Source: Oopsacas minuta
Taxonomy: Eukaryota; Animalia; Porifera
Assembly (NCBI GenBank): GCA_024704765.1
Contig: JAKMXF010000330.1
Span: 242,953-306,952 of the forward strand
DNA: 64,000 bases
Direction: 5' to 3'
Positions 4,036-27,496 of the stretch are shown piece by piece. The notes beneath the pieces are model-generated. The model was given only the letters and a program-made list of their open reading frames with translations, was not told the DNA's origin and ran no database searches. Made by a program: the position numbers and the translations under genes. Numbering within the stretch: the stretch's first letter is position 1; each line of letters begins with the position of its first letter.

Positions 4036-5766
4036 TTATAGTGTTGAGTATGGACAGATCTCCGTAGCATTGAGATCAGAACTATTGAACAATCCAGATC
4101 CAAATAGTTTGGTAGGAGTAGAATGGTCGAAATAGAACCCCAAACCCAATGCAAAAGATGCTATGAACATTGCAATTAGAGCTAGTTTAATCAAGTCACG
4201 ATACCAACTCTTATTCACTTCCTCTATGAGTATAGGTTTAACATAGGAAGTCAACAATGCACTAGATTCTATATCTTCCTTGGAAGATTGACAACTAGTG
4301 ACAGAGCCGTAGGTAGATCCGTTGTCTTTATTGTGTCCATTGTGTTTGATTATACCAACGTTCTCTTGTGCGTTACTTGCTAGTTTCCTCCAATCCATAC
4401 ACAATAGAAGTATAAAGAATAATACGGCTTGCACAGCTATAGCAGAGGCGAGACCGATCCAGTAACCCATTGTATCCATTTTAAGCACAACACACAAGCA
4501 TATAGCAAGGGGAAGAGCAATCAGCTGAAAAGCTAGTAAGTTTATAATGGAAGCGATACCCTGACGACCACACCCCTTTAGAATTCCGCTCATCACTAGT
4601 TGAAATCCATCAATAGTCTCGTAAATAGCAGTAATGAAGAGAGTACTAGTAGCCCCAGCTATGATACATTCATCTGAAGTAAACAAGAGAGGTAGGTGAG
4701 ATTTCAATAGAAAAACTCCTACAGAGAAATGCATTCCAATTGCTAAGATTATAGAAATACACAGAAAAGAAACTTTACGAGCTAAAGCGGGATTATTAGC
4801 ACCTAAGAGATTTCCAACTCGAACAGTTGCAGCCACAGTAAAACCGATAGGGACAGAGAACAGCTGACTACTTACATTAAACATAACTGAATAAATGCCA
4901 ATCTCTACTTTTGGGTTGGCGCTAGTGCCTCCTACAACCAAAAATCCTACCTCAAACGTCCACCATTCAAGACACATCATAATCAATCCAGGAATTCCAT
5001 ACTTACAATAATGTAACCAACCTCTGAAAGCATCACTACCCCAACCAGGCCATGAAGTGTGATACAAAGGAGAACAACGGATATACATTACATACAAAAT
5101 AGCCAGAGACCAATATGATATGGAAATTGAGATAGCAGAACCTTCCACACCAAATCCCAGATGTACTACAAACAAGTATTGACAACTGATATTCACTACA
5201 TTTCCTATAACTGTTAGGAATATGGTAGGATTGACTACATTCTGTGTTTGTAGAAACTTAGTGGAGAGAGTGAATAATACAACAGCTGGCTTAGCAACAC
5301 ATAAGATTCTCAGGTATTTACCAGCTATAGCAGCTACTTCCACATCTTGATGTAACAAAATCAAAATGGATTCAGCATTCAACCACAATGCCCAAATAGG
5401 GAAACACACAAGTAAGCTAAGAATGATAGCACGCTGGAAATACACACCCACAAGACGATAGTTCTTACCTCCGTAAGCTTGTGAACACAGTGTATCCATA
5501 CCAGAACTAAATCCTATCACAATAGATGTACCTGTAACATTAGCGAATGACAATGCTAGTGATGCTCCGTCTAAATATGTGCCAACACCAATATGTCCTG
5601 TGAATACTAAACTGGTAAATGGAATCATTTGTGCTCCAAAAGCAGTTATCACACTTGGCCAAGCTAGTTTGTTAATGATGATAAATTCACGAATCAGCCA
5701 GAATGATAGGATCCTTTGGTACCAATTTTTAGGTTGTGGCTTATGAATTTGCGAAGTTTCTTCCAT
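4036..5766 (-). CDS. SLC47A: MATE (multidrug and toxin extrusion, SLC47-like) transporter, copy 1, intronless
   Basis: 576-aa multi-pass ORF with MATE motifs GMDTLCSQAYG, GIPGLIMMCLEWW, VRVGNLLGAN and GILKGCGRQ, plus the C-terminal extra TM helix seen in animal MATEs. Confidence 0.93.
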   Translation of the reverse strand: MEETSQIHKPQPKNWYQRILSFWLIREFIIINKLAWPSVITAFGAQMIPFTSLVFTGHIGVGTYLDGASLALSFANVTGTSIVIGFSSGMDTLCSQAYGGKNYRLVGVYFQRAIILSLLVCFPIWALWLNAESILILLHQDVEVAAIAGKYLRILCVAKPAVVLFTLSTKFLQTQNVVNPTIFLTVIGNVVNISCQYLFVVHLGFGVEGSAISISISYWSLAILYVMYIRCSPLYHTSWPGWGSDAFRGWLHYCKYGIPGLIMMCLEWWTFEVGFLVVGGTSANPKVEIGIYSVMFNVSSQLFSVPIGFTVAATVRVGNLLGANNPALARKVSFLCISIILAIGMHFSVGVFLLKSHLPLLFTSDECIIAGATSTLFITAIYETIDGFQLVMSGILKGCGRQGIASIINLLAFQLIALPLAICLCVVLKMDTMGYWIGLASAIAVQAVLFFILLLCMDWRKLASNAQENVGIIKHNGHNKDNGSTYGSVTSCQSSKEDIESSALLTSYVKPILIEEVNKSWYRDLIKLALIAMFIASFALGLGFYFDHSTPTKLFGSGLFNSSDLNATEICPYSTL

Positions 5767-6605
5767 TGTAGAAAAGGTAAATAAATAATCACAAAATAAT
5801 AAATGTTTATATATACATTATTTCTCAGGATATAAAGTCATAAATCTAGACACCCGAATAAGTAAATGGGTCAGATCTACTGGAGCTATTATGATTGAAT
5901 TAAAGACAGAAATCACTAGCTATGGACAAGACATGTTTGATTCAATTGCTGCTGAATTAGGCACCATGTCCCAAAGACAATAAGCATCTAAACAGGAGAC
6001 TAATAAATTGGCTTTGAATACATCATTGCATTGATGGGGTATATGAGACACACAAACTAGGAACAATTTACTTTCAATTTTAGAAATGATTACACTAGTA
6101 CATTTTATGCTTAAGATACTTGAGCTAATCAGAAAATTCAAATCTCTGTCTAGGGCCAACAGTGCAGTAATCACCATATGCATTGTGTTTTTCTGTAAAA
6201 TATGGGATAATATTAGTGCTAGTGTAAATCAGCCATAATATGTCAATAATCTCAATATGGTGGTAGATGGAATTCAGGCCTAATCTAGGGATTATATAAA
6301 CTGTATACGTAGTCTATTGTAGTAAACAAATGAAATATATTCATCAAGTAAGATAGAAATATAAGTGCATCTAATAAGCAAACGCATGAGCTTAAAACCT
6401 AGGGAAATTTATGCCATGGGGATGGTTTGGGATTCTCCCAGATTTGGGGAATGGCGATCAGTTTTCTACTCATCCCCTAGCGAAAAAGTCTCCATTTCCA
6501 TGTGATTGAGCCATAGGGCTTAATCAGGAAATCATATCCATAAGTAAATATATATTTAATAAATAACTTTCTAATACAAGATACGAGTACTATAAATCTC
6601 AATAA

Positions 6606-8297
6606 TCAGTATGGACAAATTACATCAGTTGAGTTATGTGTGGAATTATACACTATATTGGGATAGGAGATGAAATTAGAGCTTGATTTCTTGAAAGAGA
6701 AACCCAAACCAACTGCAAAGAATGCTAAGAAGAGCAAACAAATACAAATCTTAATTAATTCTTGATATGATATTTTGCTTGGCATTCTCCATTTCTGCTT
6801 AATCTCGTTAGGTAGCAGAGAACTTGATTCAGAACATTCCAGAGACGAAAGACTGTTGCCATTGAAGAGTTGAGGCTCAGAAAGTCCAACATTAATCATA
6901 GCTATATCAGCAACCTTCCTCCAATTAGTGCACACAACGAGTAAAAAGAATAAAGCCGCCTGAACAAATATAGCTGACGCCAGACCTATCCAATAGCCCC
7001 TGGTAGCCAGTTTCAATACAACAGATAAACATATGGCAAGTGGTACAGCAAAAAATTGGTATACTACGAAGTTAGCGATAGAACCGATATTCTGACGACC
7101 ACATCCCTTCAATATGCCCCCTGACAACAGTCTTAACCCATCAAAGTTCACATAAATAGCAGTAAGAAATAGAGTCTGAGTAGCTCCAGCAATAATGCAA
7201 GCATCAGTTGTGAACAAAAGAGGTATGCGAGATTTCAGTATAAATACTCCTGTGGAGAAGAGTACTCCTATCACAAGAATAATACCAAGACACAAGTATG
7301 CTACTTTACGAGCTAAATACGGTTTGTTAGCGCCTAAAAGATTTCCAACCCTAACAGTTGCGGCTATAGTAAATCCGAGAGGTACCATAAATAACTGAGC
7401 ACTGACGTTAAACATAATTGAATAAATACCAATTTCAACTTTAGGATAAGCGCTAGTTCCTCCGATGACCAAAAAACCGATTTCATACGTCCACCATTCA
7501 AGACATAGCATTATCAATCCAGGAATTCCATATTTACAATAATGTAACCAATCATTGAGAGCGTCACTACTCCACCCTTGCCATGAAGTGTGATACAAAG
7601 AAGAACAACGGATATACATTACATACAAAATAGCCAGAGACCAATATGATATGGAAAGTGAGATAGCAGAACCTTCCACACCAAATCCCAGATGTACTAC
7701 AAACAAGTATTGACAACTGATATTCACTACAGTGGCGATACTGTTTAGAAATAAGCATGGGTTAACAATATTTTGTGTCTGCATGAATTTATTAGCTAGA
7801 AGGTATATCATCACAGCTGGCTTAGCAACACATAAGATTCTCAGGTATTTACCAGCTATAGCAGCTACTTCCACATCTTGATGTAACAAAATCAAAATGG
7901 ATTCAGCATTCAACCACAATGCCCAAATAGGGAAACACACAAGTAAGCTAAGAATGATAGCACGCTGGAAATACACACCCACAAGACGATAGTTCTTACC
8001 TCCGTAAGCTTGTGAACACAGTGTATCCATACCAGAACTAAATCCTATCACAATAGATGTACCTGTAACATTTGCGAATGACAATGCTATCCCCGTTCCA
8101 TCGAAGTACACTCCGGTGCCAATATGTCCAGCGAATAGCAAAGTTACAAAAGGAAACATTTGCCCTGTAACAGAGGATATCACACAAGGCCAAGCCAACT
8201 TATTGATTACGATAAGCTCATGTATCAGGGAGTTTGTTATTAACTGCTCATAGAACTTCCTCAACTTAAGATGACATGAAGTCCCAGGAACCGGCAT
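6606..8297 (-). CDS. SLC47A: MATE transporter, copy 2, intronless
   Basis: 563-aa ORF with the same MATE motifs. Confidence 0.93.
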   Translation of the reverse strand: MPVPGTSCHLKLRKFYEQLITNSLIHELIVINKLAWPCVISSVTGQMFPFVTLLFAGHIGTGVYFDGTGIALSFANVTGTSIVIGFSSGMDTLCSQAYGGKNYRLVGVYFQRAIILSLLVCFPIWALWLNAESILILLHQDVEVAAIAGKYLRILCVAKPAVMIYLLANKFMQTQNIVNPCLFLNSIATVVNISCQYLFVVHLGFGVEGSAISLSISYWSLAILYVMYIRCSSLYHTSWQGWSSDALNDWLHYCKYGIPGLIMLCLEWWTYEIGFLVIGGTSAYPKVEIGIYSIMFNVSAQLFMVPLGFTIAATVRVGNLLGANKPYLARKVAYLCLGIILVIGVLFSTGVFILKSRIPLLFTTDACIIAGATQTLFLTAIYVNFDGLRLLSGGILKGCGRQNIGSIANFVVYQFFAVPLAICLSVVLKLATRGYWIGLASAIFVQAALFFLLVVCTNWRKVADIAMINVGLSEPQLFNGNSLSSLECSESSSLLPNEIKQKWRMPSKISYQELIKICICLLFLAFFAVGLGFSFKKSSSNFISYPNIVYNSTHNSTDVICPY

Positions 8298-9113
8298 TGT
8301 TGAAAATGAAAAATTGTAATTGATTATGAATTTTGTATGTTAAAATTATGTATAAGTATGTCAGAGTAAATATCTCTAATCATAGAATTAATTCCACCAA
8401 TGAACGGGACAGGTGGATAGACATTAGACAATTGAATGAAATGCATTGTTTAATTCAACTCGTAGTTGGAATCGTAATTATTTCTATTAACACGAGGGGG
8501 GTAGTAGATAATGGATAATCTCTTCAATAGAAATTGCAAGAAAATTTGGCACATACACTTTATTTACTCGAATAGTAGCAAAAGTAATTATTATTTTCTA
8601 GCCACCCTCTGACAGGAGTTACCTCTCTAGAATACGATAATTGTATTATTGTATATGTGTACAAAAATACTATTCGTTGGAACCAAATCTAATTTGAATG
8701 TTGCCGATAGTTATAGCAAATGTCATTCTATAAGAGACAATTAATTAATTATTGCCTACACTGATAGCCGCCTAAATAGTAAAATTATGAATCTAAGGTT
8801 ATTCAGGATAAATATACTTAGGGGGGTGTATAACCCTTGAGCACCATTCTATTCAAACCCAATAAGACAATACTTAGCAGGAGTGATGAGTTGCCATCGT
8901 ACTATTCAATTTTAACAGACGGTATACGTACTGCATATACGTACACTGCAGTTATAAATCTATACATATTTGTCAAACAAATGAATTGTTAAAATTTTCA
9001 TGAGAATTGGAGTATTGGCTACTATCCATTCACAATTTGTCTCGAGACTAAATTGGAAATATTCTACTCTATAAATTACATGGAATATAATTAAACTCAT
9101 CAAAATTAATACA

Positions 9114-10778
9114 ATGCAAGAATACGAGTTTAGAAAATGGTATAGAACAGTTTCTTCATTCTGGCTGATTCATGAATTTATCATCATTAACAAACTAGCT
9201 TGGCCAAGTGTGATAGCTGCTTTTGGAGCACAAATGATTCCATTTACCAGTTTAGTATTCACAGGACATATTGGTGTTGGCACATATTTAGACGGAGCAT
9301 CACTAGCATTGTCATTCGCTAATGTTACAGGTACATCTATTGTGATAGGATTTAGTTCTGGTATGGATACACTGTGTTCACAAGCTTACGGAGGTAAGAA
9401 CTATCGTCTTGTGGGTGTGTATTTCCAGCGTGCTATCATTCTTAGCTTACTTGTGTGTTTCCCTATTTGGGCATTGTGGTTGAATGCTGAATCCATTTTG
9501 ATTTTGTTACATCAAGATGTGGAAGTAGCTGCTATAGCTGGTAAATACCTGAGAATCTTATGTGTTGCTAAGCCAGCTGTTGTATTATTCACTCTCTCCA
9601 CTAAGTTTCTACAAACACAGAATGTAGTCAATCCTACCATATTCCTAACAGTTATAGGAAATGTAGTGAATATCAGTTGTCAATACTTGTTTGTAGTACA
9701 TCTGGGATTTGGTGTGGAAGGTTCTGCTATCTCAATTTCCATATCATATTGGTCTCTGGCTATTTTGTATGTAATGTATATCCGTTGTTCTCCTTTGTAT
9801 CACACTTCATGGCCTGGTTGGGGTAGTGATGCTTTCAGAGGTTGGTTACATTATTGTAAGTATGGAATTCCTGGATTGATTATGGTGTGTCTTGACCTTT
9901 GGACGTTTGAGGTAGGATTTTTGGTTGTAGGAGGCACTAGCGCCAACCCAAAAGTAGAGATTGGCATTTATTCAATTATGAATAATGTATGCGAACAATT
10001 ATATTCATTTACAGTTGGTTATGCAATGGCTACAAATGTTCGTATTGGAAATCTCTTAGGAGCAAACAATCCAAGTTTAGCTCGTAAAGTAGCATGCTTG
10101 TGTCTTGGAAATATTTGTGTGATAGGAGTACTCTTCTTTGTTGGATTGTTTCTACTCAAATCTCAATTACCTTATTTATTCACAACGGATGCTTGTATTA
10201 TCGCCGGAGTTTCACAAACTCTAATCATTATTGCTATTTTCGAGAATTTTGATGGACTACAGTCAGTTGCTAGTGGTGTACTGAAGGGGTGTGGTCGTCA
10301 GGGTATAGCTTCGATTACAAATTTGATAATTTTCCAGTTTATCGCTACACCTCTTGCCGTATGCTTATCTGTTGTATTGAAAATGGATACCAGAGGATAC
10401 TGGATAGGAATGGCAACAGCGATATTCCTACAGGCTGTTATTTACTTGACAATTCTCTTCTTTACTAATTGGAGGAGAGTAGCAGATATTGCACAAGAGA
10501 ATGCAGGCATTTCTCAAATCACAACAAAAGAAAACATTTCTCTTCTCAGTTCTCTCTTGGAGTCTCCTGACAGTAATCCTAATCATAAAAAGGGGAAGAA
10601 ATTTGTGTGTAGAGATATGATGAAGTTGTCAATTATTTTCCTATTTATCTCTTCATTTGTTTGTGGTGTGGCTTTCTCTTTCAAACACCAGCACATTCGG
10701 CTACAGTTCAATATTACTATATATAATAACTCATCTCTCAGTGTTAATACTACTACTCAATCCCTGTGTCCATATTAG
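9114..10778 (+). CDS. SLC47A: MATE transporter, copy 3, intronless
   Basis: 554-aa ORF with the same MATE motifs, transcribed divergently from copies 1 and 2. Confidence 0.93.
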   Translation: MQEYEFRKWYRTVSSFWLIHEFIIINKLAWPSVIAAFGAQMIPFTSLVFTGHIGVGTYLDGASLALSFANVTGTSIVIGFSSGMDTLCSQAYGGKNYRLVGVYFQRAIILSLLVCFPIWALWLNAESILILLHQDVEVAAIAGKYLRILCVAKPAVVLFTLSTKFLQTQNVVNPTIFLTVIGNVVNISCQYLFVVHLGFGVEGSAISISISYWSLAILYVMYIRCSPLYHTSWPGWGSDAFRGWLHYCKYGIPGLIMVCLDLWTFEVGFLVVGGTSANPKVEIGIYSIMNNVCEQLYSFTVGYAMATNVRIGNLLGANNPSLARKVACLCLGNICVIGVLFFVGLFLLKSQLPYLFTTDACIIAGVSQTLIIIAIFENFDGLQSVASGVLKGCGRQGIASITNLIIFQFIATPLAVCLSVVLKMDTRGYWIGMATAIFLQAVIYLTILFFTNWRRVADIAQENAGISQITTKENISLLSSLLESPDSNPNHKKGKKFVCRDMMKLSIIFLFISSFVCGVAFSFKHQHIRLQFNITIYNNSSLSVNTTTQSLCPY

Positions 10779-12147: not shown

Positions 12148-13353
12148 ACTCTTAATACGAAAAGTAATAATATCCTAAATATTCAGGATACCCTAATATG
12201 GACACAGGGATTGAGTAGTAGTATTAACACTGAGAGATGAGTTATTATATATAGTAATATTGAACTGTAGCCGAATGTGCTGGTGTTTGAAAGAGAAAGC
12301 CACACCACAAACAAATGAAGAGATAAATAGGAAAATAATTGACAACTTCATCATATCTCTACACACAAATTTCTTCCCCTTTTTATGATTAGGATTACTG
12401 TCAGGAGACTCCAAGAGAGAACTGAGAAGAGAAATGTTTTCTTTTGTTGTGATTTGAGAAATGCCTGCATTCTCTTGTGCAATATCTGCTACTCTCCTCC
12501 AATTAGTAAAGAAGAGAATTGTCAAGTAAATAACAGCCTGTAGGAATATCGCTGTTGCCATTCCTATCCAGTATCCTCTGGTATCCATTTTCAATACAAC
12601 AGATAAGCATACGGCAAGAGGTGTAGCGATAAACTGGAAAATTATCAAATTTGTAATCGAAGCTATACCCTGACGACCACACCCCTTCAGTACACCACTA
12701 GCAACTGACTGTAGTCCATCAAAATTCTCGAAAATAGCAATAATGATTAGAGTTTGTGAAACTCCGGCGATAATACAAGCATCCGTTGTGAATAAATAAG
12801 GTAATTGAGATTTGAGTAGAAACAATCCAACAAAGAAGAGTACTCCTATCACACAAATATTTCCAAGACACAAGCATGCTACTTTACGAGCTAAACTTGG
12901 ATTGTTTGCTCCTAAGAGATTTCCAATACGAACATTTGTAGCCATTGCATAACCAACTGTAAATGAATATAATTGTTCGCATACATTATTCATAATTGAA
13001 TAAATGCCAATCTCTACTTTTGGGTTGGCGCTAGTGCCTCCTACAACCAAAAATCCTACCTCAAACGTCCAAAGGTCAAGACACACCATAATCAATCCAG
13101 GAATTCCATACTTACAATAATGTAACCAACCTCTGAAAGCATCACTACCCCAACCAGGCCATGAAGTGTGATACAAAGGAGAACAACGGATATACATTAC
13201 ATACAAAATAGCCAGAGACCAATATGATATGGAAATTGAGATAGCAGAACCTTCCACACCAAATCCCAGATGTACTACAAACAAGTATTGACAACTGATA
13301 TTCACTACATTTCCTATAACTGTTAGGAATATGGTAGGATTGACTACATTCTG
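12148..13353 (-). pseudogene. 5'-truncated inverted duplicate of MATE copy 3 (reverse complement of 9618-10823)
   Basis: ORF 12193-13305 translates identically to the C-terminal part of copy 3. Reverse-complement identity runs 9618-10823 vs 12148-13353 (1206 bp). No N-terminus is present. Confidence 0.9.
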
Positions 13354-14801
13354 ATCGTGATTTAATTTTGCAAGGCTATTCCATCAATAGAAACATTTCA
13401 GACGCCATTCAATTATTTGGAGAACTGGAAGACATTGATGCTTTCTTTTCATTACCAACAAATCAAAGATTTAACCTGACTCACCAACCATTATCAACAA
13501 TAGATATTCTACCTGCTTCTCCCTTACATTTCTATACGTGCATTTTTAGATGGTTTCATTTACTTGTGTACCACCTGAATTGTAACAAGCTCACATGGTC
13601 ACCATCATCAAAAGAAATTAAAGACTCCATGGTGGATGTGCGAACCATAGTTCAAGACGTAACAGGTCTAAGAATTGACCAACCAGACCCCAAAGGAGGC
13701 ACTACTTCCACTGGTGGTGTGGCTCAAAGAGCTTTTTCAAACGATTCCAAGTTTATTGAATACGCAATGTCTTTGGTTAAGATTGATCAAGGGATTCACT
13801 TTGTAAATTGCACACACAATTATCTGTCATTCTGAGAATCATAAATTCAGACAGAAAAATCAATACAGAAGAATTGAGTAACCTTTGTACAGACACCTAT
13901 CTCCCTATTCTTCAACCCTTTCCCTGGGTGAACATTACACCGACTTTACATAAATTACTAGTCCATTCTGAAGAAATACTGAGAGATGAACTTTTGGGTA
14001 TGGATTGAAATGCTTTAGTGAAGAAAGATCCGAAACCTGCAACAAATCAATCAGGAAATATAGGGAAAATCTAGCAAGGAAAACTTCCTTAGAGGATAAT
14101 GTCGTTAATATATTTGTCAGACTCTCATCTGAAAGTGATCCTGTGTTAATGAAATATCGGTCCACAGTGGGGTACGAAAAGTGCGGAGAATACGGTCATA
14201 CCCGAAGAGCTAAGTGCTGTAGAGACAATGCAACAGATTTATTAGGATCATCTATTGATAATATCGTCAAGGGCCTTATTATTGATACGATATTGTAACA
14301 ACGTAGTTTGCTGAATGTTAGTGAATAAATAATACAATAAAACATCCCTTAATATAAGTGCTTATTGTTTTTATCCAGAAATTGTTAGAATTGATATATA
14401 TATATATTAGCAAAAAAAGATATTAAAATTCTAAAACCCATTTAGAAGTATGAAGTACAAAAGCAAAAATTATGAAAAAATTGTGTATGACGTCATTTTA
14501 TAAAAATTATGAGTAATTTTGAAATTCTAACAGTTATAATTGCTTCCATGGATATGATATACTATACCCAAATAATACAATTTATAGGGCTAACATTGTT
14601 ATACAATCAGATATTAAAGAAAAACAAAATTCAGCATAAAGCTATGACGTCAGAACATGATATATATAGAACCTTATAAAAATTTTGAATGCACCAAATG
14701 ATTCCTAGCATATGATAACCTATATGCTGATGATACATTATATATGTCTATTTCAAATGAAAGTACCCATTATTTAGTAACTCCCATTTTAAGCCACTGT
14801 G
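13354..14801 (+). mobile_element. 5'-truncated Transib/RAG1-like transposon (C-terminal transposase fragment plus right end)
   Basis: ORFs 13368-13835, 13808-14008 and 14005-14298 are frameshifted homologs of the 23200-24135 transposase (GGTTSTGGVAQRAF, TPTLHKLLVHSEE, SEERSETCNKSIRKYRENLARK). The element ends in CACTGTG at 14795-14801, with an end sequence similar to 24400-24442. Confidence 0.9.
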
Positions 14802-15039
14802 AGAATGTCACAAGTAGTAACATAGTATAATAGTCAGTACTCATGGGGTACAGCAATGAATATGTTAGTTCAAAACTCAATTTGTGCAAATAGTACGAAT
14901 CTGATTCATAGCTAACCAACTACCGAAATCTTTAAGGATGAGAATTTTGCATCATGTTTTCGATTGAAGATTAAACCTCAGATATGATGGTAAATGAGGC
15001 TCGACAAATATGCATACACCCACTTGATACATATTAATC

Positions 15040-15185
15040 AAGGGCGGATCCATTTTGAAGAGCGGGACTGTAATACGGATAGCTAGTGTATTTTACTATA
15101 GGTTCTCAAATTTCCTATAACCAGTTCTGGTTATAGGACTTTTAAGGGGTTGTAACCCCACAAACCCTCCCTTAATCCGCCCCTC
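15040..15185. mobile_element. Short MITE-like element (AGGGCGGAT...ATCCGCCCCT)
   Basis: Imperfect ~10-bp inverted termini around a GC-richer core. TSD not established. Confidence 0.4.
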
Positions 15186-15378
15186 TTAACGAATTTCTGA
15201 AACAATCTAAGTTAATAAGTATCGAATAGCAAATGCCAATTGACATCCTTAATCTATAAATATTTGAAGCAACACATTTGGTAACAATTAAAGCATACTA
15301 ACCAGCTACGAAAAACACAAATGGAAATCTTCCATAAGTATGAATATATGCAACGAAGCAAATTGCTGATATACTTAC

Positions 15379-18300
15379 CACATCTTTCCTTCCATAGTAA
15401 GACGCTAGTTCAAGACAGTTCTGATCGAGTTTGTTGGTTATATGAGGATCAGCTCCAGCCTAGAAATGCAACATAATTCAGAATAGTAAATATTCAAAAA
15501 AGGATATACTATAAAGTTTAGTAACAACTCACTCTGAGTAAGAATTCCACAAGAGCATACATGCCCTCTTGTGCAGCGATTATGAGTGACGTGTCATCAT
15601 TAGCATTCTAATTAAGATTATGTTTACTGGATATATTCAATTAGATTGGTTTCGTAAATTAGTGATAATGCTAACCTGTTGATCGATCTCAGGTCTGATC
15701 GGACTGTGTTCAACTAACAACTGTAATGAGTCATAGTCTCCTTGTTGACAAGTAGTGTGTAGCGGATAGTTACCTATATTCCCAAATAATATAATACGTA
15801 TACAAATAAATACAATGTCATTAAATACCTGATCTATCAGATATTCTAGGATCAGCCCCGTATCTTAGTAGCATTAGAAGAGCTTCCCTATAATGGAATA
15901 TGAAATAGGATAAGTAGAATAAGAATGGATAATAATTGATATTAAGCAGAGTCACAAAACTGTGAATACAAGTTAATGAAACTATAAGCCTATGACATAT
16001 GACAGTAGATGTCTAATGAAATACCTGCTTACATAGAATTATTCATAATCCAGAAATCTCGGCATCAATTACAATATGAATAATTCGGGATACAGACAAA
16101 TTGCTACAGGACAAATGACTACATGTACATTGTACAATAACTAAATTCTAGTACTTCCTTGCTAATAAGTATAGATACTAAATGAAATCATTCGTGAACA
16201 ATTCTGATAATTAACTACTGGTTTAAAGGGATGTGTGTGTTTCTACTAAATTTAATAATAAGTAAGCTAGAATAACATAAATGTGAAGTAATGAAGCACA
16301 AGTAAGATACAACACCATAGTACGTGTATCCTATGATTATCTCTTAATTCGTCCCTAAAGTTAATATGTGTGCAATCACTTAGAGGAATTCCATTGGTGA
16401 TCGGTGAAGGTACTAAGAACAAGATTGGTCAATCCGTCTTCATTATCCGAACTCTTATCGTTTAGATGGCTTATCCCTGCTAAAAATTTAGATTGCTTTA
16501 TCACAACCATCCTTGTTCTCGCCTGATTGTGTTAATCCATTTCCATATAGTTGGATGGTGGCAACCAATGGTAGCATAATAGGCTCTGTGCCATGCTTCT
16601 ACAACATTGGTTACACGCGGCATCCCTGGGATACAGCGTGATGGTAGTTACACAGCCTGATACTGTTCGACTTATGTAGGTAGTCTCAAAATACAACGCA
16701 AGTTCCAGAGAAGCTGGTATATCCAGTTGTTCTATTGCTTGAGGAAGGAGTTCTTGAACTGCAAATGGAGGCCAAAAGCAAGTGCACGAAGCATTCTTAG
16801 ACGAATAATTAATTGTTCATCGTTCATACAGTCTGTTTGGAGTCATAATTCTTGAATTTTACGCCAAACATTCTGTGTAAAATGAAAGTAACAACTTTTT
16901 ACTGTAGTTATCGACCATTCCATCTCAAAGGCATTGATTGCGGCTTTCCAAAATCCAAAATCATGCTTGTTGTAGATGCTGTTGGACAAAGGATTCTGAC
17001 ACGTTCCCACATTTGAGTGTATGTTGCTTCGATTTTATTGGGTAATAGTGTAAAAAGGCAAGGTCACAGAAGGCCAGCCTGTAAAGGATTTGACCTCCAC
17101 GCAATGTATGTATTGTATATCCTTTTAAGTGAAAAGTTCAAGCGCTGTTTTGAAAGTTCCATCTGCTAGCCAAATATTGAATGTTGTTTGCAGGTCACAG
17201 TTCTATTGATCCCAAATATTAGAAATCTTGCTAGTTCAGGACAGGAATCATATAATAGAAAGTTTTCCTCTTTAGCGGTCATTATGAACTCCTGAGGAAT
17301 GGTAAGATCATGAAGACTTTCTGTTTGAACAGGAGCTATATCTAGTACCAGCTTTTTCTACGAATGGTACGTTTCATGCTATCAAGTTTTGGTAGTTTTA
17401 CAGCAGTTGAAGAAGTAATTATTTCTAATTCGTCTTCAAGAATGTTATGAGTTGTGTTATGTGTTTGACGAACTTTACCTTTCATTCTATCCTTCACTTC
17501 TAAGCAATTGACAGCCAATATGCCTGGACTATATAGATGCCCTCCAGTACGCTTTACAATTTCATTAATTTTAGTATGGACTATGGAGCCTTGCTTTACG
17601 CAATCTGATTTTCTCGCATTGCCAGTGTGCAACATCCCCCAATAACTCTGTTTATTATAGATAAAACAGCCTTCGACAAGTTTGTAAGATTCCTTATGAA
17701 TAGTTGACGCGATCTGATCAACCTGAATTGATTTGGTTCCGTATTTGGTTCAGCCATCAAAAAATTATACCAATAATTTTAGAATTATGCGAATAGAAAT
17801 GCATAATTATTGCCAAACTGCCTATCATAATATCCGATTACAGCCGAAGTTTACGTTCGTAATGAAAGGAACATTAAAATTTCACTACTTCCTTTTAATC
17901 AATTTCCGCACCAAAAACGAGATTTTAGCACCTTTTTGACATCATAAAATCACACATTTTTCCGGCAGTATTCTGTTAATAGAAATGCAGAGACGAAGTC
18001 TCGCAATGTTTTTCCAAAGAAATTTAAAATGAAATCGGCTCCCTGCCCGATTTTTACCTAAAGACTCGGTAATTGGGACTTGTTTTTCTTAAATTTCCCT
18101 ACAAATTTGCTAAAATTGTATTTTCATTGTGTTAGAATTTTATTAGAAATTTATCGTTGATAATCGTCACTGAAACTGGGCTCATTTATAGAATGAATAT
18201 TCAAAACCCTGTAAAAATACCGTATTTAATTGGAATTTAATTCAACAAATGTGGGCACCTGACTAGTATATTTTACGTCAAAAATCAAAAAATTGCCATT

Positions 18301-20169
18301 AATTTTGATTCTAAATTGCAAACTGGGTGAATTTCAATGAAACTTTTTCGGATTTTTAGTCAACCAAGATATTTTCGAAAGATTAGTTATAAGTAGAGTT
18401 ACATTTCCATATAGTCGTTTTCCGTATCCCGAATAATTCGTTATAACTTGGATAACCTACTATATAATCCTTACACAATTCACATATGTATTTATGATAT
18501 AAATATTATTGCTCCTTTGAAAAAGTATAATATTGCAGATCAAAAAAAGATAAGTCCCAGCTGAAATACAGCCAGACGCTAATTACTTAAGTATTAGGTA
18601 GTCCTTACAATTGTAAAAACATAATATAAGTTCACATATACAATAATGGAATTTACATGAATTCCAGTTAATCTGTATTATTAAGACAGCCATATTAGTA
18701 TCACAGGTGCATATTTTATGGGCACTAACTCCAGTAACAATACCGTGTAAGCATATGGTACAAGAGTACAAACTTGTATATTTCCTTGGTTAGTTTAGTA
18801 TTTTAAAATGCTTTATCAAGACACTCATATGCTCATAGCATAGAAGTCGATATATTCAAACATATATTACAAGTAGAAACAAGTGCTAGGCCATAACAGT
18901 TATTCCGGTCTCCTTGATAGAGTTCGTATAAGTACTGTATTTTCTAAGTAACAGTGATTGAACTCACTTCTGTCCATACATGATAGCATGGTGAAGAGGG
19001 GTGTAGCCTCTTGAATCTTGAAAATTGGGACTAACTTTATTCCGAAATACACTACAAATATTATCAAGGAATAAAAGTGATTATTGTAAATAGAGAATGA
19101 ACATCAACGATATCCTTTGATATAATATAATCCAACTAATCCAATATTCCATAATCTATATGTAATCTACAATCCATCCGAACGCTCTAGTTATCATATG
19201 TATAACAAATATAATGCTGCTCTGAGCAACTAGGATAATTAGATCTGATTACAATTACAGCTATGTTTGATTGCAGATGATTGGAAAGATTGCTTGCAAA
19301 ATGTATTAAGTTAATACAATTTAAGTTACACGAGTCTACATACACAGACGATATAATAAGAATTACTGAATTTGCATTTAGATACGTGTAATATCAGACA
19401 AATTATAGAATTAAGTGTTAATAATAAGAACCATGAGTAGCTAGTTGTATTGTCTGATTATGAATTATTACGCAATAATTCGAAATTAACTAATAACCAA
19501 ATAAGGTAATTGGTAAAGTAACTTAATATCTCCAACTTATGTGAAAATAATGAAATAATAGTAAATAATAGTTGCAGAGCGGACGAGCCAAATTATATAA
19601 TTATAAATTGTAACCTATCTGAACAAGTCAATGGAATAAATTGTTCCGCTCATTCACACAATACCAACAATTCTATTCTGAGATAATAGAGTTATAACTC
19701 CAATAGCAAGCTATAAGTAATATAAATCCATGACATACCACATATGTGGTATGTCACACAAACAGCTTGTTTCATTATGTATGATATTATGCATTGGTGG
19801 TACAGTTCAATTGAAAATCTAGCAAACTTATTCTTTCGAGAAAAGACTGATTAACAATATAGAAATGAAATATAACTACCTCATTCCCAGGAATTGAACA
19901 GAATTAATTCAACTATATCCAAATATAATTAATTGCTAGTTCTCTAGGAATTCAAATGGAATATTCTATGATAATCAATTTTAAGGTAAAGAAGCAATCT
20001 TTCTATAGCTATAGAATGTAAAGAAGATAGAATAATGCGAAACTAATCAATTCAAAATAAATTCATATATGAAGCAAACAGACCCCTTCTTCGTAGTTCC
20101 AAGAAGACGCTTGATAGCTGAAATATTTCCTTTCTGAGTAGCCAAAATAAGATCAAGTTCACGACCCAT
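15379..20169 (-). CDS. Ankyrin-repeat gene (ANKS1/Caskin-like N-terminus); six exons found, 3' part not found
   Basis: Manually spliced exons with GT-AG and consistent phase: 20084-20169 (MGRELDLILATQKGNISAIKRLL), 18968-19051 (PNFQDSRGYTPLHHAIMYGQK), 15829-15887, 15676-15773 (GNYPLHTTCQQG), 15533-15607 (NDDTSLIIAAQEG), 15379-15459 (AGADPHITNKLDQNCLELASYYGRKDV). Not present in the ORF track. Confidence 0.85.
16078..18439 (-). mobile_element. Decayed MULE (Mutator-like) transposon in intron 2 of the ankyrin gene
   Basis: Minus-strand translation ~16450-17640 gives SCYFHFTQNVWRKIQELGLQ and TNVVEAWH (MULE DDE motifs) with stops. 16-bp inverted repeat GAATAATTCGGGATAC (16078) / GTATCCCGAATAATTC (18424-18439), one mismatch. 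No TSD found, so the ends are tentative. Confidence 0.75.
19193..19521 (+). repeat. 329-bp direct repeat, copy A (copy B at 24448-24776)
   Basis: No mismatch seen by eye between the two copies. Confidence 0.9.
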
Positions 20170-20675
20170 CTCACAAGCAATAAAGATAATGGAAAATACA
20201 AGAACAAAACTCGCAAAAACAATATCGACTTCTATGAAAATGCTCCAAATCCAATCAATACCAATTTAACTATTAGCAACAGTGTCAGTTAGTGGCAGAC
20301 ACTCAAATCAAAATATTACCAATCGCAAGTCAATGAGCAGATATAGTACAGATTATGCTATCATGCACATATACTATGGATATACAATTATATAAATATG
20401 TTATCTTCATCTGTTACTTAATTAATAGAATTCATATTATAATTAATAGTGGCTATTCTACCAGGATCTAAAGGACTATTCATTCTTTCATGTTGCTGAT
20501 TAAACACATGTTATGTTCATGATAATGTTATAAAAGAACTGTTAATATACCATACTAGGCCACATAGAAATTTAATATAGTTAATGAACACGCGATCTAA
20601 TCAGGTGAAAACAGCTGGTCCAAAATGTTATAAAGTAGAGAAAAAAGTTAGGTGAAATTATCCATATTCCATATC

Positions 20676-21116
20676 CTACTTGCTGCAAGAACTCAGGAAA
20701 TTTTTCTGGGTAAGAGTTTCGATTGACCCTGGTCTGAGCTCCTTTATCTTCTTTATAGCTTCATCTGAAGATAGACCATCAACTTTCATAAAATAGTAAG
20801 CTAGCATTGTACCAGTTCTACCATTCCCCATCTGACAATGAACTGCAACGGGTTTGTCTCCCCCAAGTGCTGACTGTACAGAATCAATAAAGCTATCTGC
20901 CAGAGCTACAGAAGGGGATTGAAAATCTTCAATGAAAAGATCAACCATTTCAATGTTATACTTCTTTGCATTTGCTTTGTATATAGCATCTGAGTATCCA
21001 GTTAAATTAATGAGAACTTTAATCCCATTCTGGGATAATAAAGAGAAATCTTCATCTTTGTACGGATAAGCCAAGCCGGCCAATCTACCTTCTGACACCC
21101 ATGAAAAGTGGTGCAT
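20676..21116 (-). CDS. DUSP23: Small atypical dual-specificity phosphatase, DUSP23-like
   Basis: FSWVSEGRLAGLAYP N-terminus, catalytic VHCQMGNGRTGTMLA (HCx5R) and RPGSIET. Confidence 0.88.
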   Translation of the reverse strand: MHHFSWVSEGRLAGLAYPYKDEDFSLLSQNGIKVLINLTGYSDAIYKANAKKYNIEMVDLFIEDFQSPSVALADSFIDSVQSALGGDKPVAVHCQMGNGRTGTMLAYYFMKVDGLSSDEAIKKIKELRPGSIETLTQKNFLSSCSK

Positions 21117-21266
21117 TGTTAATTTAAAGCTAAATATAATGTCTAACCTAAAATACTATTTGTAAACGTAGTGAATGACAACACAAGAATGTATTAAAAG
21201 TACATTGGTCAAGCTGTTTCTCACATAAATGTCCAATTGAGGGATGTTATAGTTTGGGATGTAATG

Positions 21267-24200
21267 CACAGTGGTTTGAATGCAAAGAATAGACAAAAAT
21301 AGATTTCATTTTTAATGGTTTAAACTCGTTCTTGTTTGTTTGAATAATGTTAATTTCAAATTTCACTTCGATCGAATACATATAGCTCTCACAATATGAA
21401 TTCAAAGAATCAATCAAAAATAGTTCTATTTGCGGTTTCAGTGATGCTAATATTAGCACCAAGTTTACTTGAGAACGTCACAGAATTCTCCAAATCTAAT
21501 TTATTTTATTTCCTCAACACAATTCTGTTATGCTAAATCTGATTTCCCATTTTCGTCAGTGTATCTTTACTAATTTGGATTCAAAGTTGATTTGACTAAT
21601 GGTACTTTAGAGGTACAATATTTTTTAAAAAAGAACTTCCAAATGACCGCAAAAAAAACACCACAAAACACCACAAAACACCACTTAGAAATTAATACCA
21701 AAATGGCATTATAATATCTAGAAAGACATATTAAAATGATAAGCCCCGAAACAGTGCGCAACATGAAAAATTTCAGCGAATTCCATTGTCACCTTTTAGT
21801 TGCTATGCAAGTTATATGCTAAATTTATCTACTCGATTGCAGCATTCCAATTACCAGTAAATATAATATATAAATACATGATTAATATGACATTAACAAA
21901 TCGAATTTACTGATAATCAACCGTTTACTACGCTTTTTTCAATGACTCAAGAACTTTCCCTAACTCTCATCTTGAATTTGCTAAGATTTTGAAAGACAAC
22001 AACAACAACAACTGTATCTCGACAACACTCAGTTTCTTTGAGCAGAACTTTCAAATGGACTTCGAAGAAAGGAAACAATTGGAAGCAACGCTCCTCCGAG
22101 TAAGAAGCAGGATCAGGAAGGCAAAGAAATCGCTAGATTGCTTAGAGGGAGACTGGTGGCATTGTGGTATATCCATGGAACCAGAGTTGAAGAGGAACCG
22201 TTTTTATGATACCGTTGAGCTGTCCTCAGATGAAGAAGTCATATCCACACTCTCAGCAAACCATAGGAAGAGTATTGACAATCTCACGATGCAACAACAA
22301 CGCTCACGACTCCCAAATGTCTTGGAATCTATCAAAGCACTCTCAATCGTTGAGAATATTTCAGAAATCGAGATAGCTACACTTGCCTTGCAACTACTAT
22401 CGAACCAAACAAAACAGCGAGAAATAGCTAAAGTTTCAAAATCTGTAGTTCATGACAAGTTTTCTGGTCAATTCGGTAAATTGTTGAAGAAAAGAGCTCG
22501 ATGTTACCAAGACAGTGTTCCTTGTAGATCTCCTAGAAATTGGCAGGAGGAAATACACACAACTCCGACATCACTTGCTATCTAGCGATATTCGTTTCCC
22601 GGCATACTATAGGGTAGTAGAAGAAAGAAACAGCATAATTTTACGGTCGGATATTCAGATGTACCCCAATCCTGAAACTCCACTTGGTGTATATATGACC
22701 TATGCTCATCACGTCCGCCATACTTTTTGCAGGCTTATGTCCACGCTACCGCCACCTCCAGCTCAAGATTTTCCCCTACAATTCCAGATAGCAGACGGAC
22801 TAGATGGCTCTGGAAGTCACACTGTATATAATCAATCAAACACGAATACAGATACTAAGTCGTTTATCTTATTCTGTTTCAGAGCTGTAAAGATAATAAG
22901 CAATAGCGGTCGCGAACTCTGGAAAAATAACACTCCCAATTCTCCTTTTGCTCAACGTCCGATTTTCCTCCTCGCTGCGAAAGAAAACGAAGCTAATATC
23001 AAGCGATTTATGGACGATCTGATCAATACTGATACTGATCTGATGAGAAGTGAAGGATTTACTCTTGGCCCTGATCAGCAAGTACGAGTCGACATTGTTG
23101 ATCAATGCTTGATGGGAAAATGGCAGGAATTCTATCTGGGGCAGGTGGGGCAAGTTGTCAATTATACACAGCAACACATAAGGAACTCAGTGATCGTGAG
23201 TTGATAATACAGGGATTTCTGTCAACAGGCACATTACTGATGCAATTCAACTTTTCGGTGAATTAGAAGACAGCCATTCGTTCTTCTCACTTCCTTCAAA
23301 CCAACGTTGTAACATAACGTACGAACCAACCTCAACAATAAACATCCTTCCAGCATCTCCGTTACACTCGTACACTGGCATTTTCAGGTGGTTCAATCTA
23401 CTAATTTATCATTTGAATTGTGGAAAACGTGCATGGTCACCAACATCTTTGGCGATAAAAAATTCAATGATATTTGTCAGAAATCTGATTGAAGAGAAGA
23501 CAGGAATGAAGATAGATCAGCCGAATGCAAGTGGAGGTACTAGCTCTACTGGTAGTGTAGCTCGTCGAGCATTTTCCTGTGATTCGAAATATATTGAGTG
23601 TGTATTGTCAGTTGTTGAAACAGAACACAAAGAAACACTTTCAAAACTACATACACACTTGTCAGCTATTCTTCGAATAATCAATTCAGACAGGATCATT
23701 AACACTGAGGTCTTTGGTGATCTATGCGCCGATACATATCTCTTGATCGTTGATTCATTACCTTGGGTGAGCATTACCCCAACATTACACAGGGTATTAG
23801 CTCACTCAGAAGAAATTTTGAAAGAGTTCAACCATGGGCGAGGTCTGAAAAGTTTCTCTGAAGAGGGATCCGAGGCATGCAACAAGTTACTAAGAAAGTA
23901 TAGGGAGAATCTTGCAAGGAAGTCTTCATTTGAAGATAATGCAATGGACATTTTCGTGAGACTGGCCTCTGAAAGTGACCCTGTATTGAATCAATTTCGT
24001 TCAAGTTTAGTTTGTGAAAGGTGTGGGGAACACGGCCACACAAAAAGAGCAAAGTGTTGTAGGGATAATACCGAAAATAGATTACTAGATTCTTCCATAG
24101 ACGAAATTGTTGATTCACTTATAATTAATTCATAGATTCATTAAAATTTTAAATCTATACACTCTTATCTAAATACTATACAGGGTAATAGTATATATAC

Positions 24201-24442
24201 AGAGTAGGAGATTTTTCTTATGAAGTGGAAATTTCTATGAGTTTTATTAAATAATTTTTAAAATGTGACGTCATCATAATATGTGATGACGTCATATCCA
24301 GAAATCTAGAAGCCATAGAAGAAATTTGATTGCCCCATTCGATTCCTCGGATACGATAACCTATTCGCAAATAATACATTGCATATGGCTATCTGGTACT
24401 AGAATACCTATTCTTTACTAACTCCCATTTTAAACCACTGTG
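21267..24442 (+). mobile_element. Complete Transib/RAG1-like transposon (3176 bp) with CACAGTG termini and 5-bp TSD TAATG
   Basis: CACAGTG at 21267-21273 and CACTGTG at 24436-24442. The first 11 bp of both ends are identical (CACAGTGGTTT). TAATG at 21262-21266 and 24443-24447. Internal transposase gene. Confidence 0.95.
21989..24135 (+). pseudogene. Transib/RAG1-core-like DDE transposase, interrupted by three 1-bp frameshifts (~22490, ~23100, ~23219)
   Basis: Joined reading gives ADGLDGSGSH (first catalytic D), SMLDGK (second D), SEEGSEACNKLLRKYR (E), TLHRVLAH (Zn-binding His pair) and C-terminal CERCGEHGHTKRAKC. The ORF-track start is TTG; the first ATG is at 22055. Confidence 0.9.
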
Positions 24443-24447
24443 TAATG

Positions 24448-25195
24448 ATCATATGTATAACAAATATAATGCTGCTCTGAGCAACTAGGATAATTAGATC
24501 TGATTACAATTACAGCTATGTTTGATTGCAGATGATTGGAAAGATTGCTTGCAAAATGTATTAAGTTAATACAATTTAAGTTACACGAGTCTACATACAC
24601 AGACGATATAATAAGAATTACTGAATTTGCATTTAGATACGTGTAATATCAGACAAATTATAGAATTAAGTGTTAATAATAAGAACCATGAGTAGCTAGT
24701 TGTATTGTCTGATTATGAATTATTACGCAATAATTCGAAATTAACTAATAACCAAATAAGGTAATTGGTAAAGTAAACTACCAGTAAAACGGTATTTTCA
24801 GACTCATAGAAAAATACCAAACTGCGATATATTCGGGGACTTAAGCATTTCGTTACCAGGATACCTCGACTCCTCCGGGATTTTATGCAAATCTTCCAAT
24901 GGATCCAATATGCTGCTGATAGAAACCGAAATGTTCAAGTACTTGGAGCATTCATTGTGAACATTTCGGTGTTTATCAGCAGTATATTGGGATCTAGTGG
25001 AAGAGATAGAAGATACGCAATCTTTCTATAGCTATAGAATGTAAATAAGATGGAATAATGCGAAACTAATCAATTCAAAATAAATTCATATATGAAGCAA
25101 ACAGACACCTTCTTCGTCCAAGAAGAGGCTTGATAGCTGAAATATTTCCCAACCCATCTCACAAGCAATAAATATAATGCAAAATACAAGAAAAA
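24448..25195. repeat. Partial duplicate of ankyrin-gene intron 1 and decayed exon 1
   Basis: 24448-24776 equals 19193-19521. ~25017-25195 resembles ~19994-20215 with substitutions and a ~30-bp deletion inside the exon-1 copy. Confidence 0.85.
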
Positions 25196-25290
25196 AATGT
25201 CCAGCAGACAGACTGGTAGTGCAGCTCAGGGTTATTTATGTTTGTTCTTGTCCGAAAAATCACCTTAATGGCCACTGTTCAGCCAATATA

Positions 25291-26565
25291 CAGGGTGGCT
25301 CCAAAGTTCTGATACAAACCATTTTGCCTATAATAATTTTCAGCATGACCTACATCATTGATTTTCTATATATAATTAATACATACTATTAGGAAGAGAT
25401 TGCCTAGTCATTTATTCAATATAACCACCCTTTTTGGAAATGACAGCCCTGAGTCTGTTCGGGAATCCTTCTACTGCGGCACGCAGTTTCTTGGGGTATC
25501 TTCTCCCATTCTCGACACAAGGAAATCTTTAGAGAGCTAACTGTGTTGTGTGACACAGAACAAGCCTTGTTTTCCAAGATAGACCATACAGAATAGTCCA
25601 TAGGATTTAAATCGGGACTGTATGGTGGCCATTCATCCTTGTGTATAAAATTGGGAGTATTGTGCTTCATCCAATCTTGGGTCGTATTGGCCGTATGGGC
25701 GGGAGCACCATCTTGTTGGAAGACAAATGGCTGTCCAGAAAACATGGTCTGGCTCAGACCTTTTACCACTGGCTCTAATACAAGCTCTTTGTATGTTTTG
25801 GCATTGATTTTCACTCCTGGTGGGATGAAAATCAGTGGTGTCCGTCCAACAGCAGAGACCCCAGCCTAAACCATCACCGACAGCGGTTTCTTCATCCGAC
25901 TGATATATCTGAACTTATCAGGGATCGCTGAAACTGAGATCGAGATGACTCTGTCGTTTTGGCTATTTGTAGCCTCTTCTATGGTGAAAATTTTCTCATC
26001 TGAGAAAAGGGTATTTTGAGAACCCCAATAGCGTGTAGTGCAAGTAGGCTCTTGCTCCGGGACACTCTCTTTTCTTTCACCGACCCAGATAGGAATTGTA
26101 CCTTTTAACAACCTTTTGTATTGCTCGGCGAGATATATTGAGCTTTAAGGCCATTTTTCCCATCGAATGGTGTGGGTTCCGCCGAATCCGTTCTCGCACC
26201 ACTTTCTTGAGAGCTGAGGTCGTTACAGAACATGGACGACCAGATCTCGGCTTGTCTACAGTGTCCCCAGTTTCCTTATATCGATTTATCGTTTTGTAGA
26301 TAAATACCCTACGTCCTTTTGCAATATTCAGCAGTTTCAAAATTTCTGAGGGACTTTTCCCCGCTACATGCAAGTCAATAATTGCTGACCTCTCAGATTC
26401 CATGGTCAATCACAATATTTTTTCGAAATACAATACGCTAAATTGAAATAATATTTATAAGGGAGCGCATAAGGTATGTCATGGAAAAGCAAATCATTGA
26501 GAATACTTCCTGATAATGGTTATATATTAATTGTGATTTTGTATCAGAACTTTGGAGCCACCCTG
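25291..26565 (-). mobile_element. Tc1/mariner DD37D (maT-type) transposon, non-functional transposase
   Basis: 28-bp perfect TIR CAGGGTGGCTCCAAAGTTCTGATACAAA with TA on both sides. HTH ORF 26077-26409, FSDEK, and QQDGAPAH...SPDLNPMD with 37 residues between the last two Asp. Premature stop at 25866-25868 plus frameshifts. Confidence 0.95.
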
Positions 26566-27496
26566 TACATGATGGAAGTTTGAAATTTGAATCACAGGTA
26601 CCCCTCAATGTTACGGATGTTCTGATGTAATGATTTTGGCCCGATGCAAACTCATCATGGGATTATTACGTCACCATGACTGACAAAAACATCTAAATTA
26701 TCCAAATTTCGATATTTTGAGAATTTCATAATATTCGAGACAGGAAATGCACAGATCACTAACCTAAAGCCACGTAAGAGTTGCAGTATTACCGCAGAAG
26801 GCTATTAATTCGAATTTGGGTCGACCATGGATAAAAAGTACTAAAATTTCCATAAATATTAACCCCTAGGCACCACTGTATTTAGATTATTGAGTAATAA
26901 TTATAAATGCAATAATCAGAGTTTAAGTGAGGTATTGCAACCAGTTTGGAAAAGACTTGGGTAGTAATTGGAAAACCTATTGACTGGGTTACATATAATT
27001 ATTGTCCAGTTTTTGCTGAGTTGGTCTTTTCGGGCAAACACTGAGCGATTGCAAGCGAATTTTGCAAGAAAAATTCAATAGAAATAAAAACAAATCCTTA
27101 CAAATCGCATATCGGATAAACATATAGATATATTATATCAGGTTACAGACACAATATCGTAAACCAAAGAGATGCACAACCTAATCATACAGGCAAAATA
27201 ATGTAAATAAATTCTCCAGGTAAATCACCGTGGATTGAAATATAATTATGGAGAGTCAAAATATTATGGATGTTATTGTGGTAAAATTAATTCAATTGTC
27301 ACAGAATGGATCTGTAGTCGTAGCAAACATAAATGGAAATCATACAAATTTCAAATATACTATACATAATATGAATAATGAATAATGTTTTCAATACGTA
27401 GGCAATTGATAAAATAGATAAATAGCAAGGTTGGCTGAATAAAGTAAAAACAAACACAGCAATAATCGAACCTTTACTGGAAGAGAATTAGAAAGA

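Follow-up and report, generated by a model that had tools for sequence, protein, structure and literature searches.

Transib transposons form the superfamily from which the vertebrate RAG1 recombinase is thought to descend. A locus in the glass sponge Oopsacas minuta raises the question of whether an early-branching animal carries such an element with both of its ends preserved and, if so, what kind of relative of RAG1 it is. The locus lies on contig JAKMXF010000330.1 (NCBI GenBank assembly GCA_024704765.1), of which we analyzed 64,000 nucleotides (positions 242,953 to 306,952 of the forward strand; hereafter the window, whose first letter is position 1). An original prediction, made from the letters of the window, had placed here a complete RAG1-like/Transib transposon with CACAGTG at both ends and a target-site duplication (TSD) of 5 bp, in what appeared to be a sponge genome, and had assigned it to the RAG-ancestor lineage. 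We conclude that positions 21267-24442 very probably hold a Transib DNA transposon of O. minuta, one copy, now decayed, of a family that is young and present in many copies.

Boundaries and ends of the element

The element is 3176 bp long and has one RAG1-like gene inside it (Table 1). TAATG at 21262-21266, CACAGTG at 21267-21273, CACTGTG at 24436-24442 and TAATG at 24443-24447 are all present as predicted. Across the left boundary the sequence reads, from 21262 on, ...gtaatg followed directly by CACAGTGGTTTGAATGCAAAGAATAG..., and on the right side (24408-24447) it reads ...CTATTCTTTACTAACTCCCATTTTAAACCACTGTG followed directly by TAATG. To examine these boundaries, we placed on 21000-24700 the Logan contigs of three runs from a single sample; these are assembled contigs and not base-level reads of this exact copy. 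Summed depth stood at about 90-120 on either side and reached thousands over 21248-24471, with a rise of about 30-fold exactly between 21267 and 24442. Contig pieces from other copies start at 21267 and stop at 24442, and 8-11 contigs per run exit at 24442 into unlike flanks. The boundaries are thus not a product of chance, given the jump in depth, the copies with identical end bases and the two complete copies that have perfect 5-bp duplications of their own. Depth, copies and the homology described below agree on a fully delimited element of the Transib superfamily with a heptamer of the recombination signal sequence (RSS) type and a 5-bp TSD; the host is indeed a sponge, the hexactinellid O. 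minuta, and the single transposase gene is there, though split into four reading-frame pieces by frameshifts that the prediction had anticipated. A 12.4-kb stretch of JAKMXF010000330.1 matches window positions 14676-27116 letter for letter, and this contig also encodes the phosphatase that flanks the element (20679-21116, minus strand).

Inside each terminus lies the same 9-mer, AAAGAATAG. It follows the left heptamer after 10 bp and the right one after 19 bp, and at the right end it reads CTATTCTTT on the forward strand. This spacing, and with it a 9-bp asymmetry of the ends, is found in all copies and in the sister family represented by locus L006. On the right, the box keeps its offset in L002, L004, L005, L006 and L007, and a truncated sibling element elsewhere in the window has AAATAATGG at this place. 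The 11-bp terminal inverted repeat (TIR) CACAGTGGTTT is identical in L002, L005 and L006. Between the window family and L006 (~75% identity), the block formed by the heptamer and GTTT and the 9-mer are perfectly conserved while the spacers are unlike, which argues that both end blocks and their spacing are under selection. No second gene and no RAG2-like kelch open reading frame (ORF) was found within the element, since the longest stop-free stretch outside the transposase gene is 72 codons; L006 likewise has a single gene between its TIRs.

One further feature of the 3' end is a CRE-like palindrome, TGACGTCA, which four copies from three diverged lineages have 155-156 nt from the 3' tip: the window copy, its 67%-identical sibling, L005 and L007. 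It is absent in L006 and L004. Four of the eight TGACGTCA sites of the window are in its two Transib 3' regions, those of the sibling at 14645 and 14488.

Copies and sister families

Further loci (L001, L002, L004, L005, L006 and L007) were retrieved through related proteins and then aligned. Copies of the same family share their ends and are 94-98% identical when only substitutions are counted, or 92-98% identical by gapped BLAST. When the termini of other copies were examined, the same end bases were seen in L002, L004 and L005, so the different termini that the prediction had allowed for did not turn up. The TSDs observed are TAATG in the window, CTATG at L004, TAAAG at L006 and TGAAA at the outer flanks of L002. 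The window copy is one dead copy among dozens.

Several loci have a history of their own. The insertion that interrupts L004 (L004:5241-7961, 2.7 kb) runs from CACTGCTCAACAA... to ...TTGTTGAGCAGTG, with TAA as its 3-bp duplication, and resembles a PIF/Harbinger-type element. In L002 (L002:1-5397, JAKMXF010000296.1) two partial copies overlap, one inverted relative to the other, and have private variants in common, with the pentamer TGAAA at the left end of one and at the right end of the other; the arrangement looks like a single insertion that was later part-duplicated in inverted orientation. Depth also varied between runs. In run X1, summed depth was 20-30 times higher over the ORF (21992-24099) than over the non-coding ends of the element, and in runs X2 and X3, from the same sample, depth over the element was flat; the excess in X1 could reflect RNA or additional relatives that consist of the ORF only. 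In run X5, from a related organism (B), the contigs end short of the empty-site junction.

Homology, fold and phylogeny of the transposase

Among solved structures, HzTransib of Helicoverpa zea (PDB 6pqn, 6pqx) is the best match to the sponge protein. The last gene piece alone, compared with the PDB, matches HzTransib (6pqn) at E 1e-12, BbRAG1L at 1e-3 and RAG1 at 3e-3, and in Pfam the ORF pieces gave only a sub-threshold RAG1 match (21.4 bits, with the cut-off at 25). When 1.8 billion representatives were searched exhaustively, 1792 relatives came up, of which the closest intact one is P0190 (724 aa), 65-85% identical to the four pieces of the window gene. P0190 matches HzTransib at E 1.3e-22 (83 bits, 23% identity), BbRAG1L (6b40) at 4e-10 (42 bits) and RAG1 at 4e-4 (22 bits). 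An AlphaFold model of P0190, built on an alignment of 56 sequences (mean pLDDT 88.8), was compared with known structures by Foldseek and gave TMt values of 0.82 for HzTransib, 0.74 for BbRAG1L and 0.66-0.75 for RAG1; the match of the model to the RAG1 fold spans up to 660 columns, including the NBD.

The residues expected of an active site and of zinc binding are conserved. Across the 56 aligned relatives there is no variation at E345, E642, C403, C406, H614 and H619 and almost none at D285, and the D/E/E positions and zinc ligands are shared with HzTransib. Directly after the CxxC motif, P0190 residues 420-471 stand opposite 16 HzTransib residues, are co-linear with BbRAG1L and are predicted to form helices; this segment was compared at the level of sequence. 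HzTransib lacks about 36 residues after CxxC, and it also lacks the long N-terminal region. The sponge protein is ~230 aa longer than the solved 497-residue HzTransib chain.

Of the relatives of the transposase that have a name, the closest are proteins of O. minuta. A maximum-likelihood (ML) tree was midpoint-rooted, with ENA, Logan and JGI metagenomic proteins on short contigs as the non-sponge relatives. It places the window element beside P0190 (support 99), in a clade (support 100) that unites all sampled O. minuta proteins with proteins from long ENA contigs, apart from the metagenomic relatives. More than 100 protein clusters are of this kind, and many of them are O. minuta gene models, to which UniRef gives the name 'V(D)J recombination-activating protein...' and which carry Pfam PF26100 RAG1_RNase_H.

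Damage to the gene in the window copy

The window copy is dead and cannot make a transposase, as it has four frameshifts and has lost a zinc-ligand cysteine. A loss of 4 nt (AACT) after 21951 separates the body of the gene from its true start codon, the ATG at 21942; an added A at 22490, within an A-run, and the loss of a C after 23099 and of another after 23218 break the frame further. The loss at 23218 is also found in both L002 copies. The other three indels are absent from the sister copies, and the contig variants agree with this. Two further indels, in frame and private to this copy, add 6 nt at 21996-22001 and remove 3 nt at 22228, and the second Cys of the copy's CxxC, encoded by TGT or TGC in all other copies, has become Tyr. 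The three catalytic residues are intact despite the frameshifts. Introns as the cause of the frame changes were ruled out, because the sister copies differ there by indels of 1-4 nt. In GenBank the gene is annotated as three models, and one of these matches PF26100 RAG1_RNase_H.

If the frameshifts were errors of assembly, the window copy would instead be a complete, functional and autonomous element. The break at 22490 does fall in an A-run, and most other copies read through each of the sites. However, neighboring genes in the window keep unbroken ORFs of 895 and 1109 codons, the private in-frame indels and the private Cys-to-Tyr change are confined to this copy, and the L002 copies have the frameshift at 23218 too, as one would expect of real mutations. 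We therefore regard assembly error as exceedingly improbable, and keep to the reading of a copy that has decayed.

Table 1. Features of the Transib element in the window and of related copies.
Feature	Position	Strand	Remark
Left TSD, TAATG	21262-21266	.	same letters as 24443-24447
Left terminus, heptamer CACAGTG (21267-21273) in exact 11-bp inverted repeat CACAGTGGTTT	21267-21277	+	
5' non-coding part, no second gene	21267-21941	+	~97% conserved among same-family copies
Left inner box AAAGAATAG, heptamer + 10 bp	21284-21292	+	offset also kept in L006
Transib transposase gene, ~730 codons if unbroken	21942-24135	+	four frame-breaking indels
Reading-frame pieces of transposase gene	22052-22489, 22491-23099, 23099-23218, 23218-24132	+	
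First catalytic Asp, GLDGSG	22803-22805	+	aligns with RAG1 D600
Second catalytic acidic residue, Glu in AAKENE	22983-22985	+	invariant in family alignment
Zinc-binding CxxC	23156-23167	+	second Cys to Tyr (TAC, 23165-23167), window copy only
Third catalytic Glu, SEEGSEAC	23872-23874	+	aligns with RAG1 E962
C-terminal zinc knuckle CERCGEHGHTKRAKCC, CX2CX3GHX5C, CCGHC type	24013-24060	+	
Two TGACGTCA palindromes, 11-bp hairpin pair, in 3' non-coding part	24266-24294	.	
Right inner box AAAGAATAG (CTATTCTTT on + strand), heptamer + 19 bp	24408-24416	-	
Right terminus, heptamer CACAGTG (reads CACTGTG, 24436-24442) in exact 11-bp repeat	24432-24442	-	
Right TSD, TAATG	24443-24447	.	read from sequence
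Truncated sibling, 3' half of related Transib	13352-14801	+	67-74% identical; ends CACTGTG at 14795-14801
L005, O. minuta	L005:2827-5979		full-length copy, 97.8% identical, flanks AAACA vs TATTG, no TSD
L004, O. minuta			97.1% identical, TSD CTATG, interrupted by 2.7-kb foreign insertion
L001, L002, O. minuta			94-95% identical, decayed
L006, different ENA assembly			sister family, ~75% identical, intact 724-codon ORF, perfect TSD TAAAG, same 10/19 layout
L007, another ENA assembly			5'-truncated copy, ~80% identical, right end the same

Placement among Transib and RAG-like elements

Transib elements have been defined by a length of 3-4 kb, a transposase of ~700 aa, 5-bp TSDs and TIRs composed of a CAC heptamer and a nonamer (Kapitonov and Jurka, 2005; PMC1131882). 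The sponge element has the same size class, a single gene, homology to the RAG1 core that is nearer to Transib, the D/E/E residues and zinc ligands, a 5-bp TSD, and a CAC heptamer with an inner, nonamer-like box. Its short-spaced 5' and long-spaced 3' ends likewise resemble those of some families of the superfamily, in which the 5' end is RSS12-like and the 3' end RSS23-like (PMC1131882). It differs in its sponge host, in its heptamer, which is exactly CACAGTG and not the insect consensus CACAATG, in its spacing of 10/19 instead of 12/23, and in the base composition of the four target sites seen, to which we return below. A close parallel for the spacing is AanRAGL of a pelagophyte, in which a second box lies 4 or 13 bp from a 13-bp terminal element, that is, at 10/19 from the heptamer, as in the sponge (PMC9435367).

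Within the superfamily, two subgroups have been distinguished (Tao et al., 2022; PMC9435367). Members of Subgroup I, among them ctenophore and bacterial elements and Hydra Transib-9, combine asymmetric TIRs with a CTT1 tail and a retained alpha11-alpha12 segment, and stand nearer to RAG1L; Subgroup II includes HzTransib and also families with asymmetric ends. All three features of Subgroup I are seen in the sponge family: the asymmetric TIRs, the CTT1/CCGHC tail and the ZnC2 segment (alpha11-alpha12) after CxxC. Its zinc knuckle differs from the canonical CCGHC motif, CX2CX3GHX4C (Martin et al., 2023; PMC10629977), in being one residue longer (X5), and the canonical X4 form is present in many relatives of the sponge protein. 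Asymmetric TIRs, CCGHC tails and NBDs of the GRPR/K type have all been found in Transibs (Martin et al., 2023; PMC10629977); the NBD-like region of the sponge protein has HRK and not GRPR/K.

These features could also be read another way, with the sponge family belonging to Subgroup II as an HzTransib-like element, or to a third Transib lineage, and with the knuckle, the ZnC2 segment and the asymmetry retained or convergent and uninformative about the ancestor of RAG1L. HzTransib is the best solved match by both sequence and fold, Subgroup II too has asymmetric-ended families (Tao et al., 2022; PMC9435367), and the ML tree holds no named Subgroup I sequence. Such a placement is nonetheless unlikely in our view: 52 residues of the sponge protein, co-linear there with BbRAG1L, face 16 in HzTransib, and the CCGHC tail belongs to the CTT1 type, which RAG1L and Subgroup I have, and not of the CTT2 type assigned to the subgroup of HzTransib (Tao et al., 2022; PMC9435367).

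A more far-reaching alternative would make this a RAGL/ProtoRAG-type element, or the remnant of a RAG1L+RAG2L transposon that recently lost its RAG2L gene, and in either case closer to vertebrate RAG than ordinary Transibs are. BbRAG1L/ProtoRAG and vertebrate RAG1 do share with the sponge element the core fold, heptamer-type ends and 5-bp TSDs. It has the CCGHC knuckle, present in BbRAG1L as well, and the segment after CxxC that is kept by RAG1L and absent in HzTransib; its ends are asymmetric, and its fold can be matched to RAG1 across more columns than to HzTransib. However, all three of these RAG1L-like features have been published for Subgroup I Transibs (PMC9435367). By sequence HzTransib is much nearer, at 83 bits against 42 for BbRAG1L and 22 for RAG1, and no kelch gene is linked to the transposase within the TIRs, either in the window copy or in its intact, single-gene sister L006. 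The sponge element is, moreover, a multi-copy mobile element, unlike the domesticated vertebrate RAG1. We consider a RAGL origin highly improbable and retain the assignment to Transib, with features of the Subgroup I type.

The predicted link to the RAG-ancestor lineage accordingly stands in so far as the element is a Transib with the features of the subgroup placed nearest to RAG1L, but it has no RAG2-like gene and is not ProtoRAG-like. In the same way, the element is complete in both ends and its TSD but not in its gene. Its special status was put too high. Papers on Transib or RAGL elements already describe all of the following: heptamers of the CACAGTG type, TSDs of 5 bp, asymmetric ends, NBD-like regions and CCGHC tails. 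Public automated annotation already flags the family, through a RepeatMasker class that includes Transib, through UniRef names and through PF26100. The O. minuta genome paper names Transib only in a RepeatMasker summary line, 'Other (Mirage, P-element, Transib)' with 1552 elements, 1.22% of the genome (PMC10280926). In the literature that we searched, no Transib has been described in Porifera, and no sponge appears in Tao et al. (2022; PMC9435367) or its supplements. The element is a new member of the Transib superfamily, and not a new kind of RAG ancestor.

Proposed mechanism and significance

By analogy with its relatives, an intact transposase of ~730 aa, with a RAG1-core fold and a D/E/E active site, would bind one left and one right end and nick beside the CAC of each heptamer. 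Release would then proceed through hairpins on the flanking DNA, and the 3'-OH ends would join the target 5 bp apart, giving the 5-bp duplication (TAATG at the window copy). With the 9-mer at 10 bp on one side and at 19 bp on the other, the enzyme probably pairs a left with a right end, in the manner of the 12/23 rule of RAG. The inner DNA is likely to be recognized by the NBD-like domain at the N-terminus and the CCGHC zinc knuckle at the C-terminus. As its ends are intact and its gene does not work, the window copy could move only with the enzyme of another, intact member.

Five points weigh against our reading of the locus. The full-length copy at L005 has no TSD (AAACA on one side, TATTG on the other); recombination between copies or mutation of a flank may have removed it. 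Among the loci compared, none is an intact copy of exactly the window family, the evidence for one coming from contig variants. The TSDs are AT-rich (20-40% GC), unlike the GC-rich Transib targets that have been published (PMC1131882) and those reported for RAG; for Transib this is a reported but non-defining property, and four TSD pairs are too few to conclude from. The match to Subgroup I (Tao et al., 2022) is drawn from three features, and not from a tree with named references. Finally, we infer the chemistry and the function of the 10/19 spacing from HzTransib, RAG and BbRAGL.

The window copy itself adds little, being a dead member whose notable features are all published for Transib or RAGL. 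The family as a whole has more to offer: abundant young sponge Transibs with features of the Subgroup I type would extend that subgroup to another early-branching animal phylum, and they supply many natural end variants for testing the pairing of asymmetric ends. We also raise, tentatively and as a rather doubtful proposal, the idea that the glass-sponge Transib radiation is the one that, among animals, best preserves the proposed RAG2-less ancestor of RAGL, with ends made asymmetric by a 9-bp offset, a CCGHC clamp, a RAG2-binding segment, continuing activity and, unlike other Transibs, a preference for AT-rich targets; the window family would be part of this radiation. If so, it would provide a natural system for studying a pairing rule of the 12/23 type that works without RAG2.

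Genomic surroundings

The neighbors of the element are ordinary animal genes with long single exons (MATE transporters, an Ig-domain protein, an ADAM protease, TRAPPC11 and a RAD51 paralogue), which fits the compact, intron-poor genome of O. minuta (PMC10280926). Three full MATE paralogues lie at 4036-10778, beside a truncated MATE gene (12193-13305, minus strand) that adjoins the broken 5' side of the sibling Transib at 13352-14801. The element at 21267-24442 stands 150 bp upstream of the start codon of a dual-specificity phosphatase gene (20679-21116, minus strand), and therefore in the likely promoter region of that gene. Just downstream of it, at 25416-25745 (minus strand), a GenBank gene model with a weak DDE_3 (Tc1/mariner-type) match marks another transposon remnant.

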